A DNA stretch of 64,000 nucleotides. Origin: Trichosphaerium sp. ATCC 40318. Taxonomy: Eukaryota; Protista; Tubulinea. Location: NCBI GenBank assembly GCA_038496445.1, contig JALMLS010000216.1:594144-658143 (forward strand), in the 5' to 3' direction. Shown in pieces: positions 3,746-22,580 of the stretch (position 1 is its first letter; each line of letters begins with the position of its first letter). Made by a program: the position numbers and the translations under genes. The notes under the pieces are model-generated. The model saw only the letters and a list, made by a program, of their open reading frames with translations, did not search any database and was not told the origin of the DNA.

Positions 3746-6700
3746 ATGGAGACGCCTAGAGGGCGTTTAGGGGTAGAGTCCATATTTATTGTCTCTGTTA
3801 CAGAGGTAATTTCGCAAAAGCTAAATTTCGCATACTTATAAGACCGTAGAACGCTCTAGGAGCTTTTGATAAGGAAAGCGTTGGTTCTATTACTAAAGTT
3901 GGCGTTCACAGTGACTCCATACAAATAACAGACACTGTACGCTGTTTCATCGCTTTATATTACTTTGGCAGTTAAATGTGTTGTTAATTTAGCCGTTTAG
4001 GTAAAATACAGATCAGTTTACCTTGGTTCACATCAACTACCTCTTGTCAGCATATTTGCTTCTCTACAATCTACATTTCTCTTACTTTTTGATAAACTCG
4101 ACAATACCATCACTAAAAAATTACACGATATTGCTGTAGATGTAAGGTAAGAAGAGCTCTTTGGTTCTAATTAAAAACAATTCCATAGCTAGGAGTAGTG
4201 TTGGAGAATTTAGTAATTTTTCTGGTTTTTTTTTAATTGACAATTAAACATTAGGGCGAAAGCGTACAAGGCAACTATTATTCTATGTGGTGTTCGTATA
4301 AAACCATCAAGAAAAGAGATTGCTAATCTTACCGAAAGCGTTCGTTCGTTAAATATAAACGCAACATTTTTAATAAGTACGTAAGCTAAATAGTACCCGA
4401 AACGGGCCATTTTTATTTTTCGCACGTGATTTTTATTTATTTATTTTTTATGTTTAATGAGTTGTAGGCGATAAGCGGAAGACATCAGGTTATACAGAAC
4501 TCAAGACAGCGCTCATAAACGCTTCTCTAAAGCGAGGAAAATGCCGATATCACGAGGCGATTAAAACAGTTCTAGATGCACCTACATCAGCTTTCATGGC
4601 CAAGAAAACGTTCAATGAGTTGTGTAAGAAAGCAAAGGTCGCAGAAGAAGACATACAATTGGTTTTAGAGGAAGTTATAGATACTGGCTTGGCACAATAC
4701 TCTCCGAAATGTAACACGCTACTTTGGGAGCCAGATGTTTTGTTTTCTTTCTTTGATGCTATTCGATCATTACCAGAACCTCTAGTACCTTTAGAGACTC
4801 TTGTTAAACAGTTTGGAAAAGAACCAGACAGCATGGAGTTTCAAGTATCGCTCGAACTTTGCTGGGGAAATTCAATTATTTATGTTAAAACACCTATGAA
4901 AGAAAGTAGAAATGGTAAAGGATATGATCTTCGCCCTATGCTCTTTGCACCTCTCTTGCTATCTCCGCGCCCTCCCAAATATCTAAGCAGTTTTTTAAAG
5001 CCTAGCAAAGACGGTGAAGGTTCGGAAGTAGCACAACAGTGGGTATTTGTATCTGATATCCCTGATCTTGTATTACACCGTGTTTTGCTTCATCTCACAG
5101 GCGTTTCAAAGGTACACAGATTATTACTATAAATACTAAACTTTGTTCTTTTTCTCATGCTGTGAAAGGTACGCGTGAGAGACATTTGGCGTCAAGGGAT
5201 TATCATTGATTCTGACACTGAAGAAATTGCTGTTTTTGCACCTACAAAAAATATACTACGTGTAAAAGCAAAGGAGTATCTAAGGTAAGCTTATCATTGT
5301 TGTATCATTCGAGAATTATGGTAACAGAAATCGTAGCCCTGCTGATTGGACTTTGTTTCTTCAAGCAATTGAAGCAGTTGAAGGAGGATTACAGATCAAT
5401 GGTGGAGACCGAGTAGAAAAGCGTCAAGTTGTTGTACCTCGTTCTAAGGGATCAAAGAGTGTTGATACATATTCTATGGATGATGTTTATAAACAAGCCT
5501 TTGCAGGTACAAAATACAACGCGAAAGATGATAAGTTGGAACGTTTGTATTTAAGTCGTTTTTAGGGTCAACGCAAATACAACTTAATATTGCTTTGACT
5601 TGTGATGTTAATGATGTAGCACCTGATCTAGGATTTGTCACCAAGAAACTATGTGCTGTTAAAGACATAGTTGTAGTAGCACAAAAGTGAGTGTTTTACA
5701 AGTACAACACTTGGAGGTATTGGTTTTTAACTGTATCTTGTTTAGGGAGTCTGAAGGAAAGCTTAAGGATGAAGTTGTCACAATACTTACAGATACAAGC
5801 TCTATGATCGAATTATCACGACGAAATCTTCTCCTCAGGTACTTACTATGAACATTTGAGTTTCATGTGCTTTTCACGTGCAAACCTTTTTTCGTTTGGA
5901 GAATTAAGTGCTTGTAGGCGATACACTCAATCCAATTTTGCAAAATATCGAGGTATATCCACATCGCCTAAAGGTCTTGTGTTTGTAAAGCAAGAGCGAA
6001 TGCATAAAATCATGCTTAAGGTACAGAGAGCTATTTGTCTTTTGGCTAAATTCAACTTTACTTAAACAACAATAGAAAAAGTGGAGTTGGAAACAGCGTA
6101 TTGCTGGTGCCATACAATTAGCTAATGGATTACATATTTTACATTCTCAGAATCCACCGCTCATTTTACCAGAGCTGAGATCATGGGTCGTTCGTGTACG
6201 TTCATATTTCTTTATTTTTCAGTGAGCATTACCTTTGACTCTTTTTTTACAACAGGCGAGTTTAAACAAACGTGATAAACCTGAAGTTAAGATTGGTATC
6301 TCACAAGCCAGATATGTTTACGGAGAACCATTGAGATCTATTTTAAGAATATCAGGAAATAGATTCCGCTTCAATCCACCTGAAGTAATCAACTCAAACT
6401 TGGCGATAGATCAAAGGTGATTTCCTCCATCGAGTGTCTGTTATTTTTAATAGTGTCTTAGGGCTAATATATACAGTCTTGGTATATTACTTTGGGAGAT
6501 TGCAAAGTGGGATGGATCTCTACCATTCTCAAGCTACAAGGAATATCTCGAATCTGAAAAGGAAGAAGAATTGAAGGAGAAGGAACTTCAAAATCAAGAA
6601 TTGCTTGATCATTACCGTCAAAATGGTACCTCCTCTCAGATTATGTAGGATCTCTTCCTAACATGTCTAAAAGGTATACACATCAAGGGTAATGTGGCAG

Positions 6701-6989
6701 TTGTACAAACATGGGATAACGCTCGTCTAATGGTTCGAAAACTTTGTTTCTTTTTCTTTTTTAATTCTTAACTTTTTTTTGTTCTTAGAAAGCTATTTGC
6801 AATGAAAGCCTTAGACCAGCAATAACAGATAGTATGCCTCCTGGATACGTAAAGATAATGAAAAGGTGTTGGTCTGGAAATGTTGATAGAAGGCCTAATA
6901 TGCATGAAGTCATTAAAGCGCTTGAAGGAGTTAGCAGTAAATTAAAAGATAATAGAAAAAAAGCTTCATTAAGAAGTCATAAAGACTAA
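3746..6989 (+). CDS. Roco-like protein: degenerate ROC, COR, degenerate TKL-type kinase domain, spliced
   Basis: ROC-like remnants: IFASLQSTFLLLFD and KATIILCGVRIK. COR-like segments: LEEVIDTGLAQY...LLWEPDVL, LFAPLLL, FVSDIPDLVLHRVL, IWRQGIII. Kinase C-lobe: GLHILHSQNPPLI, FNPPEVI, ANIYSLGILLWEI, CWSGNVDRRPNM. Confidence 0.7.
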
Positions 6990-7194
6990 CAACAATATGA
7001 TATTGTAGCTCCCAGCAGCATTGATAACAATAATAATATTCTGTATTTCTTTTCCTCGTGTATATTGGGTAGCTTCAGTCTAGACTAAATCACGTGCATT
7101 GCTTTGTAGCTCCGTTAAAAAAGTGCCTGTTTTCCGTAGTGTCGTTCACAGAATTCGTTGCTATAAGTCAGGTGATGGTCAATTTGCTCTGAGC

Positions 7195-17847: not shown

Positions 17848-18509
17848 GGTACCCTATTATGTCTGTCAAAAAATCTAATGCTTTATTTATAGATTAACAC
17901 TTTTTGAATGAAAAAACCTCCTATGATCAGAGACGCGTCTAGATTAACAGCAAAGAAGTTTATCCATAAATAATATGGCGCTAGCAATCAAAGCATCCCA
18001 TTGATGGGATCGCTTAGTATTAACATGTGGAGCTTGTAACACCCCACCGACTGGAGTGGAAAATCAAAAAACACAAGCATGATGAAAGAAAAAAAAACAA
18101 AAACATAAAACCTCAACAGTTTCTATTGACTCCTCCTTTGGTTTTGTTTTTTTTTATCTTCAATAATCATAAAACTGCACGTGTTCCTTTATGGAAGTTC
18201 AATATTATCACAGTGGATCTAAATATTTGTAAAGGAAGTATCAATCGAGGTTAAAACTTTGAAGTTCTCAAAAAAAAAAAAAAAGCCGAAAGATTGTTTT
18301 GACTTATTCGGACTGTTATGTTACTCACTATACCCGATATCTTTTTTTTTATCATCTCCGCGGCTTATCGAACACCTTTAGCAAATACCTAGCGATACTT
18401 GCGTTACAGTACTTCGTTATCTAGGATATAAATCTGAAGTGAAAAAAAAAATACTAAAATCATGACAGACGGAACTCAAAACGTGGAGATTTCAATACGT
18501 CTGCAACGC

Positions 18510-19114
18510 ATGGGTAAAACTCAAAGTAGATCACTTATTCTTGGTCTTGATGGAGCAGGAAAGACAACAATATTAACTAGATTAAGAGGTATAACTGGTG
18601 TACACTCTAATCCTACAGAAATATACGAAACGCATAACGTTAAGCGGAGAGGTCTTAAAACAGAATTCTGGGATGTTAGTGGTCATAGATCAAAGAGAAC
18701 GCTTTGGCCTTATTATTATCAAGGTACAAGAACACCTCAGGTTATTATATGGGTAGTTGACGCGTCAGATGCATCAAGGCACGTTTTTTTTTGTCAGAAA
18801 CACGTGATATTTAGAAAAATAACTTACTCGCTCGTAGGCTTCCTGAAGGTAAGAGAGAGCTTCATAGAGTATGTAAAGATAAGGCATTACAAGACGCAAT
18901 TATATTGGTTTTATTGAACAAGTGTGATTTACCTCATGCAAGGTCTGCTTGTTTTATAGCTGCCGGATTGGACCTGCAATCAATTAAACAGACATTATAT
19001 TGTAAAAAGTTATCTGCAACTACTGGGTTTAACTATAAACAGACAAAGAAATGCTTGTATAAAATACTAAGGCAACTGCGTGGTGTAAAAGACTTTGACG
19101 AGTACTACGATTAA
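18510..19114 (+). CDS. Arf/Arl-family small GTPase, one GC-AG intron (18779-18837)
   Basis: GLDGAGKTT, WDVSG, LWPYYY, WVVDASD, NKCD and SA motifs. The ATG at 18510 gives a myristoylation-type start MGKTQS. An in-frame upstream ATG exists at 18462. Confidence 0.88.
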
Positions 19115-19570: not shown

Positions 19571-20389
19571 ATGCTATTAAACGCAAGAATTCTAGCATTA
19601 GTGGCCTTCATTGTATTATGCGGCGCGTATTCAGCGTCTAGACCAGATAATTTTCAATGCCGCACTAGAAATGTACTAGTTTCAAACCGTGCATCTGTGT
19701 ACGCTGCTGAAAAAGCAGTACATGGTCTTGTTTACAGCGTCTATAAGATGAACCGTAAAGCCGTAGCAAGAAACCCTACAGGCTATAAACTGGGCCAAAA
19801 ACTATGGAGCTACTTCATGCACAACAATGCGAACAAAAGGGCGTGTAGCACAGCAAGGTATTTCATGACTGAAGCCGAGACGAAGCAAGTACTACAAGAA
19901 GCCACCTCAGATACATCTAAGCTACGTTTGAACCTTCAAAACATGAAAACAGCAACTATAAGATCGAATGGCAAATGGGCTTTTTCATCTCGACCAATGA
20001 CTCTCGGTGCCTATGCAAAGTACTTAAAACCAGGTCGATGGCGCGTAGGGTCTCGTTTTATGGGTTGGGCAAAGGGCAGCGAAACAAATCTACACGGAAT
20101 GGATATTCATATTTTGCCTAACGGTGTCATTACCAAGAAAGCTGATGGGTCTTGGTTCTTCACTGGTCATGTATCTGCTAATGATTGGTTTGATCTAGAC
20201 TTTAAAAAAAGAGGATCCAGGACACTTGAGGGTGAGATTGGAACAAGACTTTTCAGTCTTGTACAAGGTAACGGTTTTGATGTAGCAGGCGCTGGTTTAT
20301 GTGTTATGTACATACCTGGCCAATACGCATTGTACTTTAAGAGGGATTACCCATCAATTAGGTGTTTAAACCCAGGAACAAGATATTAA
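19571..20389 (+). CDS. Secreted protein with colicin M-like (lipid II phosphoesterase-like) C-terminal domain, intronless
   Basis: Hydrophobic signal peptide (aa 1-21). Residues ~155-240 (GVITKKADGSWFFTGHVSANDWFDLD...RTLEGEIGTRL...GNGFDV) follow the colicin M catalytic-domain pattern as I recall it. Confidence 0.75.
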   Translation: MLLNARILALVAFIVLCGAYSASRPDNFQCRTRNVLVSNRASVYAAEKAVHGLVYSVYKMNRKAVARNPTGYKLGQKLWSYFMHNNANKRACSTARYFMTEAETKQVLQEATSDTSKLRLNLQNMKTATIRSNGKWAFSSRPMTLGAYAKYLKPGRWRVGSRFMGWAKGSETNLHGMDIHILPNGVITKKADGSWFFTGHVSANDWFDLDFKKRGSRTLEGEIGTRLFSLVQGNGFDVAGAGLCVMYIPGQYALYFKRDYPSIRCLNPGTRY

Positions 20390-20574
20390 ATAAAGAATAG
20401 GTTTTTTGTGAAAGACAGTACCGTCTATGGGTTACCAATTTACCTGCTGACACGCGGCGCTTCCTTTTATCATTGTATAGCGTAAGTACTTGTGTTAGTA
20501 CATTCTCAAGGATTGTCAACGACATTATTTGTTTCATAGCTTAAATACTACAAGGACAGTTTCTATTGGAACGT

Positions 20575-22580
20575 ATGAGTATGTTGTCGCATAGGGCGTT
20601 AAATGTGACACAAGCTAAAGCTATGCGCGCCAAAAGGCCACAAGTGGCCGTATCTACGCTCGAGGCGCATAAATCGGTGCTTGTTAATGTAATAGCACCG
20701 AAACTGCAGTATAAAGTAATGGCGGATTGGTTTAAACTTACAAAAAAGCAATTAAAAGCTCAAGGATGGCTTGGGATGTTGAAACAGTAAGTTTGGCACT
20801 AATTTCACAGTTTGACATTTTAACTTGGTTTAGATATAACGAATCTATCGTTTACACTCTAGAATGTATATTCCCAGAGCATGAATGGCCTCCATGGAAG
20901 TTTGCGTGCGTTTCATTAAATTCACCCTACAATTACAAACAGTGCCCTAGAATAACAAAAAAGGAGTATTTGGCTACGAAAAAGCAGCGTCGTGAGCTTT
21001 TTAATGATGTTGCTAAAGAGCTCAACATAAAAATTCTTGATGATTGGCACAATTTCAGTTATAAATCTCTTGTTGTCAATGGTGGTTGTACTCTTATGGT
21101 AAACGAGTACGCAAGCCTCCTAAGGCTGAATGTACTATGAGCGGTTATGGTTATACGTATAATAGGTTCCGTGGATCTCTCCACCAAGCACTGAAGACAC
21201 TTTATTCATCATTTGATTGGGATGTGTCACGTTTTCCGTAAGTATTTTTTTTCTTTGCATAGACGTCATTCTTTGTTTTTTAGAGGATCGCCACGTGATT
21301 ATTGGGATGATGTTAATCGCCAAAGGAAACTATTAGAGTCTAAAAGTGAGATTATGAAGGTTAAAACAGTTGATGATTTTCATGATATTGGAAGTAGAAC
21401 TGCTTGTAGTATTGTAAGCTGTATTATGTACAAGTACGTATGTTACCTAATTATGCCTGTCTAACATGTATTAAGACATGGAAACTCTTTATTTAAAGCA
21501 CTTAAAGCTATGTATCCTGGATATGAGTGGCAAGAAAGTAGATTAAGCCCGAGGTAACTTTTTTTTTTATCATTATTTTTATCTTCAGTATTGATGGGTG
21601 TCTTGTAGGACTCCGAGGCTTCTTCCTTTTCGCCACTGGCATTCTAGTGAAAACGTTTTAACTTTTTTAAAGTCTATGGAAGTTAATATGAATATAACAA
21701 ATCCATACGAATGGTAAGACCAAAACGGGAACACAAACAATATCGGTTTTTTTTTGTTTATTTATTTCAAGGTATCGTGTGTCAACAGACCAAATAAAGC
21801 ATAAGGGAGGTAAAGGGTTACTGAAGTACTACCCTGGAGTATTGAATATGTTATATCCTGATACACATTGGAAATGGAGTAAATTCCCGCACATGGGCAA
21901 GAAATCAATACAAAAGTTAGTAATCATTGTATAACCAATTTAAATCTAATTTCTCTTTAGTGCACTCAAAGAGGCTGCCTCAAAGATATTTGTTGGCCTT
22001 AAGCTAGAAGAAGAGTATATAATTGGAATGAGAGATAGTAACGGGCTACCTCTTTCTGTAGATATATTCGTTCCATCATGCAATCTTGCGCTTGAATATC
22101 AAGGTAACTTCACTGCTTTTTGACTTTAAACCTCAATTACTCTAGGCGAGCACCACTACCATGATGTAGTGTCTTTTGGTTCTCCTTCTGTAGTATATAG
22201 AACACGTGATAGCGAGAAATACTTACAATGTCGTCATTTGGGTACGAAGAACACATCTCGTCATTTCAGCTAACATTTAAAACAAGGTATAAAACTGGTA
22301 GATATTCCTTATTGGTGGAAAGGTGACATACAGAGTATTGTAGATATAATAGCCAAGAGCCATCCAGGTATAGTAAGTGCTATTTCATCGACTGTCAACA
22401 ACAGTGAACCAATAACAGAGTTGACAAGTGCTGGGTTTGATGCACACGAAGGTACGACTTTTATTGCTGTTTTGAACACTCTGTATACATTTTCTAAAAA
22501 TTATAGCTGCCCTTGGATCTAGTATTATGTCTCCTGTAAGGAATGCCACATATACTACGTTTTCTGTCAAATCGGCGTAA
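20575..22580 (+). CDS. Protein with tandem helical 'DW..GG..L..Y..S..YP..W' repeats and a C-terminal PD-(D/E)XK-like (DUF559/RAP-like) domain, spliced
   Basis: Repeats such as DWFKLT..LKAQGWLGML, IFPEHEWPPWKF, MYPGYEW and LYPDTHWKWSKF. C-terminus reads LSVDIFVPSCNLALEYQGEHHY...RDSEK...GIKLVDIPYWW. The start is approximate. Confidence 0.7.

Follow-up and report, generated by a model that had tools for sequence, protein, structure and literature searches.

How does a protein resembling colicin M (ColM), a bacterial toxin directed against the peptidoglycan precursor lipid II, come to be encoded in the genome of an amoeba, and what might it do there? The question is raised by a stretch of 64,000 nucleotides from Trichosphaerium sp. 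ATCC 40318 (contig JALMLS010000216.1, positions 594,144 to 658,143; hereafter the window), in which an original prediction, made by reading the sequence alone, had placed a ColM-like domain in a secreted eukaryotic protein encoded at 19571-20389. Apart from enzymes of the ColM type, no protein toxin is known to destroy lipid II by catalysis. Our analysis identifies the window protein as part of a new and divergent ColM subfamily, the first in a eukaryote. The explanation that best accounts for the results as a whole, to which we give a probability of about 0.6, is that a gene of this subfamily was captured and duplicated and that its secreted product cleaves lipid II.

The case for homology to ColM begins with sequence comparison. 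The subfamily has four known members: the window protein, one paralog from the same genome, and two exported bacterial proteins from unrelated metagenome contigs, P0001 and P0006. When the window protein alone was compared with all sequences in the Protein Data Bank (PDB) using phmmer, eight matches with an expectation value (E) of 10 or less were obtained and all eight were ColM-family proteins (ColM, pectocin M2, PaeM and syringacin M; E 0.08-1.1), with query residues 155-242 aligned to the catalytic region. Adding the three homologs to the query improved these matches 100- to 400-fold: a profile built from the four-member alignment (A1) recovered ten distinct ColM-family sequences from the PDB at E values between 2e-4 and 2e-2, the first unrelated sequence following at E 2.3. 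BLASTP against a reference ColM, that of pAPEC-O1-ColBM (L009:899-1714, annotated "lipid II-degrading bacteriocin colicin M"), aligned 61 residues, of which 31% are identical (pairwise E 3e-5). For profile-profile comparison we used a second alignment (A2) of 14 ColM proteins, from 28 relatives collected. Comparing A1 with A2 in hhalign produced a match that covers 82 columns with a probability of 94.2% and an E value of 1.1e-7, residues 154-239 of the query being paired with ColM residues 172-258. In the reverse direction, a hidden Markov model (HMM) made from A2 was run against 583 stop-free segments from the window and three related loci and ranked the window open reading frame (ORF) first (15.9 bits) and its paralog second (14.1 bits), the best decoy reaching 6.1 bits. 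The proteins are colinear over ColM 172-258, and the G-S-W hairpin of ColM is kept, as is its (P/G)-(Y/F)-x-(I/V) strand. Since every method converges on one small family and agrees on both region and register, we regard membership of the ColM superfamily as very probable.

The gene and the features of its product, in window coordinates, are as follows.

19571..20389, + strand: intronless coding sequence for a 272-amino acid (aa) ColM-like protein, predicted to be secreted (ORF listing and sequence; ATG start, TAA stop at 20387-20389)
19571..19636, + strand: predicted signal peptide, approximately residues 1-22 (from the sequence: basic residue, hydrophobic core and AYS/AS cleavage region)
19685..19909, + strand: helical N-terminal half, approximately residues 39-113, with conserved C92 (AlphaFold secondary structure; predicted local distance difference test (pLDDT) 54-84)
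20030..20287, + strand: region of homology to the ColM-type catalytic domain, residues 154-239, equivalent to ColM 172-258 (hhalign, profile versus PDB, Foldseek and VIA)
20183..20221, + strand: equivalent of the active-site motif, D205 to R217 (profile-versus-PDB and hhalign registers)
20288..20386, + strand: tail at the C-terminus, residues 240-272, in which C244 and C265 are conserved (family alignment; extends beyond the length of the ColM C-terminus)
20389..20394, + strand: AATAAA hexamer overlapping the stop codon, a possible polyadenylation signal (background about 1 per kb per strand)

The 272-aa intronless ORF lies exactly where the original prediction had put it and has the residues quoted there. 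Given six frames, 64 kb and the local base composition, about 7e-4 open frames of 272 codons would be expected by chance and the frame is thus unlikely to be accidental. The predicted signal peptide, likewise part of the original claim, is recognisable at the N-terminus from its basic residue, its hydrophobic stretch and the small residues (AYS-AS) that follow. Beyond it lies an S-x-S-x-P motif, present in all four subfamily members, and then C30. The four cysteines of the mature chain (C30, C92, C244 and C265), which had been picked out as possible disulfide partners, prove to be conserved in each of the four proteins in the family alignment. This conservation is consistent with an extracytoplasmic, disulfide-bonded protein, and the mature product of about 250 residues is, judging by its sequence, probably secreted and disulfide-bonded.

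Does the protein retain what a ColM-type enzyme needs for catalysis? The residue register originally read by eye is reproduced both by the profile-versus-PDB alignment and by hhalign: D205 corresponds to D226 of ColM, F207 to Y228, D208 to D229, S216 to H235, R217 to R236, E222 to E241 and T225 to T244. The motif reads D-W-F-D-(x7)-S-R in the window protein and D-W-F-N-(x5)-D-R in the paralog, where ColM has D226-K-Y228-D229-(x5)-H235-R236. Five of these positions (D226, D229, R236, E241 and T244) are invariant across the 14 natural, enterobacterial ColM proteins of our sample and the window protein keeps the equivalents of all five, whilst in the same sample position 228 is occupied by Phe in four sequences and position 235 by Phe or Tyr in five. 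Across the subfamily, D205 and R217 are found in all four members, as are D178, K189, G193 and S194. The divalent cation is held by D232 in syringacin M and by D241 in PaeM, and in ColM-domain variants that look inactive, PmnH and PmdH, either the Asp or the Arg has disappeared (PMC8469651, PMC5821083); both residues are present in the window protein. With all the naturally invariant ColM residues kept, and neither Asp nor Arg lost, the balance tips slightly towards a ColM-like phosphodiesterase activity.

Structure prediction provides a second line of evidence. An AlphaFold2 model built from the four-sequence alignment (pLDDT 65, predicted template modelling score 0.65) has a beta-rich domain at residues 126-256 that bears the ColM-like region and is mostly at pLDDT 76-93, falling below 50 in the loop at 207-212. 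The original prediction had proposed to check the fold by modelling and structure searches and, as far as the model can be relied upon, three such searches bear it out, the ColM family coming first in each. Against 350,542 PDB chains, Foldseek returned ColM-family proteins at ranks 1-14 (probability up to 0.99, E 2e-3) and probabilities of 0.08 or less thereafter. VIA, an aligner independent of Foldseek, placed syringacin M, pectocin M1, PaeM and ColM at ranks 1-4 among 48,161 representatives; the top three had Z scores of 6.1-6.3 over 113-128 residues at approximately 3.9 Å, and ColM (3da4) a Z score of 5.5 over 172 residues at 5.5 Å, covering model residues 3-250. A shape search of the ESM Atlas gave a single clear match, to the colicin M cluster, with a template modelling (TM) score of 0.52 both ways over 195 aligned residues (query 1-250), the next match scoring 0.28. 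The language-model neighbours of the window protein were DUF3289 clusters together with one Colicin_M cluster.

The predicted fold of the C-terminal beta-rich domain thus matches that of ColM and its gammaproteobacterial orthologs PaeM, syringacin M and pectocins M1 and M2 (PF14859, ColM-alpha) and, on the model, the match probably extends to the whole chain, which at 272 aa is close to the 271 aa of ColM. The model suggests that the helical region at approximately residues 39-113 sits where ColM has its central helical domain, and superposition of the whole chain on ColM and on the colicin M cluster indicates, at low confidence, that only the short translocation segment has been lost and that a helical domain of the central type has been retained. 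The earlier claim that a signal peptide had replaced the entire translocation and receptor N-terminus of the colicin would then hold for the short translocation segment and not for the helical region. In other respects the protein is unlike ColM: in place of the TonB box and unstructured translocation segment there is a eukaryotic signal peptide, ColM has no counterpart of the four conserved cysteines, there is no immunity gene and the host is a eukaryote. The parts that make up a modular colicin-type bacteriocin (TonB box or translocation segment, receptor-binding domain and linked immunity gene) are accordingly missing, although at the position of the receptor-binding domain a helical region is predicted at the level of the fold only.

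A separate observation concerns two hairpin-like stretches that echo one another, residues 125-139 (19943-19987; T-A-T-I-R-S-N-G-K-W-A-F) and residues 185-199 (20123-20167; G-V-I-T-K-K-A-D-G-S-W-F-F), both of which resemble T-L-T-I-S-x-N-G-S-W-T-Y of ColM. The resemblance to ColM is seen in a second BLASTP high-scoring segment pair (E 0.031) and in HMM domain 1, and the echo may mean that a beta-hairpin of the ColM fold was duplicated internally long ago.

The genome encodes one paralog of the window protein, on contig C171 (L002:1082-2091, 1010 nt), and a family-profile search of the genome found no copy beyond these two. The 5' exon of the paralog (L002:1082-1207) encodes a signal peptide of its own and the equivalent SASRPD start. 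The intron is about 225-245 nt long, with a GTACGT donor and in-frame acceptors at 1432 or 1450. An AATAAA hexamer lies 2 nt past the stop codon (L002:2093-2098), the G+C content at third codon positions (GC3) is 0.33 and a gene encoding RCC1 repeats (L002:2521-3141, contig C171) adjoins the paralog downstream. The two amoeba proteins are only about 31-35% identical (31% by BLASTP), yet both are intact and both keep the residues that are invariant in the subfamily, which points to long purifying selection.

Where did the gene come from? An exhaustive phmmer search of 1.84 billion representatives identified just two real relatives outside the genome: P0001, with 268 aa and an E value of 9.5e-21, and P0006, with 293 aa and an E value of 2.8e-4. 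The remaining matches, P0002-P0005, are repetitive Ig-like, gag or coiled-coil proteins and were discarded as low-complexity artefacts. The one match from a metagenome scan (L010) was rejected as spurious, since it is out of frame, runs through stops and coincides with a gene for a repetitive surface protein. A word-indexed protein search gave no match with the single protein and only P0006 with the family profile, and a tblastn search of 72,556 plasmids gave none. The contig carrying P0001 (L003) is gene-dense, with a GC content of 54%, and encodes an outer-membrane phospholipase A and a Crp-like regulator; P0001 itself has a GC3 of 0.72. P0006 adjoins a hybrid histidine kinase on a contig of 32% GC and has a GC3 of 0.29. 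Both bacterial proteins start with lipoprotein-like or signal sequences, and neither has a recognisable TonB-box architecture. A search of genome contigs with P0001 found no match, and a dehydrogenase encoded next to it on L003 has only 25-36% matches, scattered over several phyla, which point to no particular donor lineage.

A phylogeny with bacterial homologs had been suggested as a check, and in a four-taxon maximum-likelihood tree the two amoeba proteins do group together against the two bacterial ones (support 92/89, long branches), which fits a single transfer followed by an old duplication. The wider superfamily (ColM-alpha, ColM-beta and DUF3289) is known only from bacteria (PMC5821083, PMC8469651, PMC11148199), making bacterium to amoeba the parsimonious direction. 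We consider a bacterial origin of the amoeba gene likely. The most parsimonious history is one transfer from a bacterium to an amoeba, an old duplication and exchange of the bacterial export signal for a eukaryotic signal peptide. Horizontal acquisition, as first proposed, is thus supported by bacterial nearest relatives, host-like composition, eukaryotic neighbours and a paralog that bears an intron.

Set against the idea of a captured gene with a lipid II-cleaving product are a number of results that weigh against it, and these are best considered together with the explanations that they would favour. The alternative that survives best, unlikely though we judge it to be, accepts the protein as a true member of the ColM superfamily and supposes that its chemistry or role has shifted, whether to another polyprenyl-pyrophosphate-linked glycan (O-antigen, teichoic acid or capsule), to lipid binding without cleavage or to a job that is not antibacterial. 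The strict DxYD(x5)HR signature is not present in the window protein: Tyr228 is replaced by Phe and His235 by Ser, and the loop between the D229 and R236 equivalents is two residues longer (x7). In ColM, the D226A, Y228A, D229A, H235A and R236A proteins each have less than 2% activity and are non-cytotoxic, and Y228A and H235A, affecting the two positions substituted here, are thus among the changes that abolish activity (PMC8469651). The equivalents of the catalytic residues D226, D229 and R236 claimed in the original prediction all align in the window copy but whilst D205 and R217 are invariant in the subfamily, the D208 position varies (D/N/D/G). In addition, the bacterial relatives are exported or lipoprotein-like and have no recognisable immunity gene, which would be unexpected for a self-toxic lipid II hydrolase, and ColM-domain variants of the PmnH type, apparently without hydrolase activity, offer a precedent for such a shift (PMC8469651, PMC5821083).

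Against a shifted role, the equivalents of D226 (the metal ligand) and R236, the residues most closely tied to catalysis, are the ones that do not vary in the subfamily, the window copy also retains those of D229, E241 and T244, and the inactive variants cited are proteins without the Asp or the Arg. The loss of the His, correctly noted at the outset, is less worrying than it first appeared, with this residue missing also from five of the 14 ColM proteins and from active burkhocins. Burkhocins typically have Phe at the Y228 position and no His, and purified BurM1 and BurM2 killed target strains (PMC4661593). However, according to a 2021 review no burkhocin has been assayed on lipid II (PMC8469651), so that the precedent covers killing and not chemistry. 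On sequence grounds we continue to favour, by a narrow margin over its negation, a lipid II-type phosphodiesterase with an antibacterial role.

A much less probable explanation is that the protein resembles ColM by convergence or by chance and is a member of an unrelated, undescribed family. What speaks for this is that the individual scores are modest. The best phmmer E value is about 0.1, and the 15.9 bits of the reverse search are not significant at genome scale. Foldseek E is 2e-3 with TM scores of 0.2-0.3 against PDB chains, and the VIA Z score of about 6 compares with about 5.5 for unrelated helical-bundle noise. The model was built from only four sequences and its active-site loop is poorly modelled; that of P0001 (pLDDT 51) is too poor to be useful, its Foldseek list being noise with ColM chains at ranks 2-30. 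The Pfam Colicin_M model (PF14859, gathering threshold 27 bits) had no match at E of 10 or less on the window protein and none on P0001 or P0006, and NCBIfam and Pfam together gave no relevant match on the window protein. Over the whole genome PF14859 found nothing, in a scan whose first-look filter passed almost no candidates and whose controls were silent too; the 14-sequence ColM HMM also found nothing genome-wide, a weak negative for the same reason of a filter that let almost no candidates through.

A reverse score of 15.9 bits is too low to register genome-wide, which accounts for both blank scans and places the subfamily beyond the reach of the curated Colicin_M model. As the Pfam threshold is not reached, the proteins are better described as a divergent sister subfamily within the ColM superfamily than as canonical members. 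Of the homology tests put forward with the original prediction, the search with the Pfam model therefore failed, whilst profile-profile comparison by hhalign and the search of the PDB with the A1 profile succeeded. Chance resemblance is difficult to reconcile with the agreement of sequence, profile and profile-profile comparisons and three structure searches on family, region and register, with the alignment of the catalytic Asp and Arg in that register, or with scores that rise as homologs are added and stand some 8-10 bits above decoys.

Slightly less probable again is an ancient presence of the family in eukaryotes, or an origin in amoebae, the bacterial proteins being derived by transfer from a eukaryote. 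With just two bacterial relatives among the 1.84 billion representatives, the direction of transfer rests on parsimony, and the window protein shares as much identity with P0001 (33%) as with its own paralog (31%). However, the superfamily outside this subfamily is known only from bacteria, the two bacterial relatives come from genomes as different as 54% and 32% GC, and the tree pairs the amoeba copies with one another. The weakest explanation, and one that we regard as highly improbable, is that the ORF stems from contaminating bacteria or from a chimeric assembly, or was inserted recently and is not expressed. This might be suggested by the lack of an intron in the window copy and the absence of the exact protein from a collection of 15 billion proteins, but is contradicted by the position of the gene, which lies deep in a contig at least 658 kb long, has eukaryotic neighbours and shows host GC and GC3, and by a sole close relative, on another contig, that has a spliceosomal-type intron and an equal signal-peptide and S-x-S-x-P start, diverged from it and yet, like it, intact.

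We conclude that the ORF is very probably a genuine nuclear gene of an amoeba-type protist. The window covers 594-658 kb of its contig, in an assembly of 70 Mb in 642 contigs. GC content is flat across the locus, and the GC3 of the ORF (0.36) is close to that of the neighbouring Arf exon (0.31). That exon belongs to the upstream neighbour, an Arf/Arl-family small GTPase gene at 18462-19114 (+), about 450 bp away on the same strand. Its Pfam match is split, with the ORF at 18462-18917 covering profile positions 12-96 and that at 18905-19114 positions 119-171, indicating an intron-interrupted eukaryotic gene with at least one short intron near 18917. The same strand carries, further downstream at 20566-21464 (+), overlapping or adjacent ORFs of 74, 124 and 83 aa that probably represent a single intron-containing gene; these have no Pfam match and no likeness to ColM immunity proteins. 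With an Arf GTPase on one side and these ORFs on the other, the locus bears out the earlier statement that no immunity gene is adjacent.

The surroundings of P0001 hold two further observations. Six near-identical tandem genes encoding 72-aa proteins flank it, two upstream and four downstream (L003:4246-4728 and 6126-7136). Their products, for which no Pfam family is recorded, have a signal peptide followed by a Ser/Glu/Arg-rich tail; they could be secreted peptides or else act together with P0001, perhaps in an immunity-like role. At L003:8402-9811 (-) is an ORF of 469 aa with four or five tandem repeats of about 24 aa, the unit being W-Y-(I/L)-R-Q-D-S-Y-S-D-Q-L-E-S-R-K-D-T-x-L-Y-D.

Three known systems help to place the protein. 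The burkhocins BurM1 and BurM2 and other ColM-beta bacteriocins resemble it in keeping the Asp and the Arg, in having mostly Phe for Tyr, in a semi-conserved D229 and in the absence of the His (PMC4661593, PMC5821083). Burkhocins also have an N-terminal signal peptide, using Sec or Tat (PMC4661593), and a C-terminal extension past the ColM module, of about 30 aa (PMC5821083), the extensions being compared by description only. Unlike the window protein, they are bacterial, 370-380 aa or so in length, and have linked immunity genes. A sample of 401 Burkholderiales genomes yielded no PF14859. DUF3289 (PF11692), described in 2024 as a type VI secretion system (T6SS) effector with a DUF943 immunity protein and as a structural homolog of ColM (PMC11148199), is similarly a branch of the ColM fold whose sequence has diverged out of reach of curated ColM models, although it is delivered by the T6SS where the amoeba protein has a signal peptide. 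The Pfam DUF3289 model matched none of the subfamily members, the ESM Atlas shape search returned no DUF3289 cluster and a sample of 301 genomes from the class to which the Marinifaba genome belongs yielded no PF11692.

The closest parallel in evolutionary terms is provided by the dae amidases of ticks, derived from the Tae effectors of the T6SS (bioRxiv 10.1101/2020.04.10.036376). Here too an interbacterial weapon has been captured, the genes encode signal peptides, contain introns and have been duplicated, and they are retained without an immunity gene, none being needed because the host lacks the target. Like the dae genes, the amoeba gene has its nearest relatives in bacteria and is embedded in a eukaryotic genome with eukaryotic features. 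The differences are in the target, the peptidoglycan sacculus for dae as against a putative lipid-linked precursor, and in the host, an animal as against a protist; and the antibacterial activity of dae has been demonstrated whereas that of the amoeba protein is predicted from its sequence.

How might such an enzyme act? In the scheme that we envisage, the protein would enter the endoplasmic reticulum, form two disulfides and then, along the secretory or endolysosomal route, be delivered to the phagosome or secreted, to meet bacteria in the one place or the other. Other factors would breach the outer layers of the bacterium, making TonB-dependent import unnecessary. D205 would then bind a divalent cation and R217 engage the pyrophosphate, and the undecaprenyl-pyrophosphate-linked peptidoglycan precursor (lipid II) would be cleaved as it is by ColM, blocking wall synthesis. 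An immunity protein would be superfluous in a host whose own dolichyl carriers are saturated at the alpha-isoprene unit: alpha-saturated (dihydro) lipid II is left uncleaved by ColM, and dolichyl-linked glycans are presumably spared (PMC8469651). In full, the proposal is of what would be the first enzyme from a eukaryote to kill bacteria by destroying lipid II, a captured and duplicated ColM-type bacteriocin put to use as a digestive or immune weapon, and requiring no uptake receptor because the phagosome gives access to the bacterial inner membrane. In this complete form we hold it tentatively, at a little under even odds.

No ColM-like protein from a eukaryote, an amoeba or another protist was found in open-access papers or on bioRxiv, in keeping with the original statement that no eukaryotic ColM-family enzyme had been described. 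Surveys of the family list ColM-type proteins from Proteobacteria only (PMC5821083, 2018; PMC8469651, 2021); the 2018 survey makes no mention of eukaryotes (PMC5821083), and the orthologs in the 2021 review are from Pseudomonas, Pectobacterium, Klebsiella and Burkholderia only (PMC8469651).

The domestication of interbacterial toxins by eukaryotes is already known from the tick dae genes and, if the reading preferred here is correct, a new class of enzyme would join the short list of such captured weapons. [quoted passage not shown] The subfamily is sparsely sampled, with two amoeba and two bacterial members in 1.84 billion representatives, and its conserved core (the Asp, the Arg, the Gly-Ser-Trp hairpin and the four cysteines) helps to sort what is essential from what is dispensable, such as Tyr228 and His235, in the mechanism of ColM.

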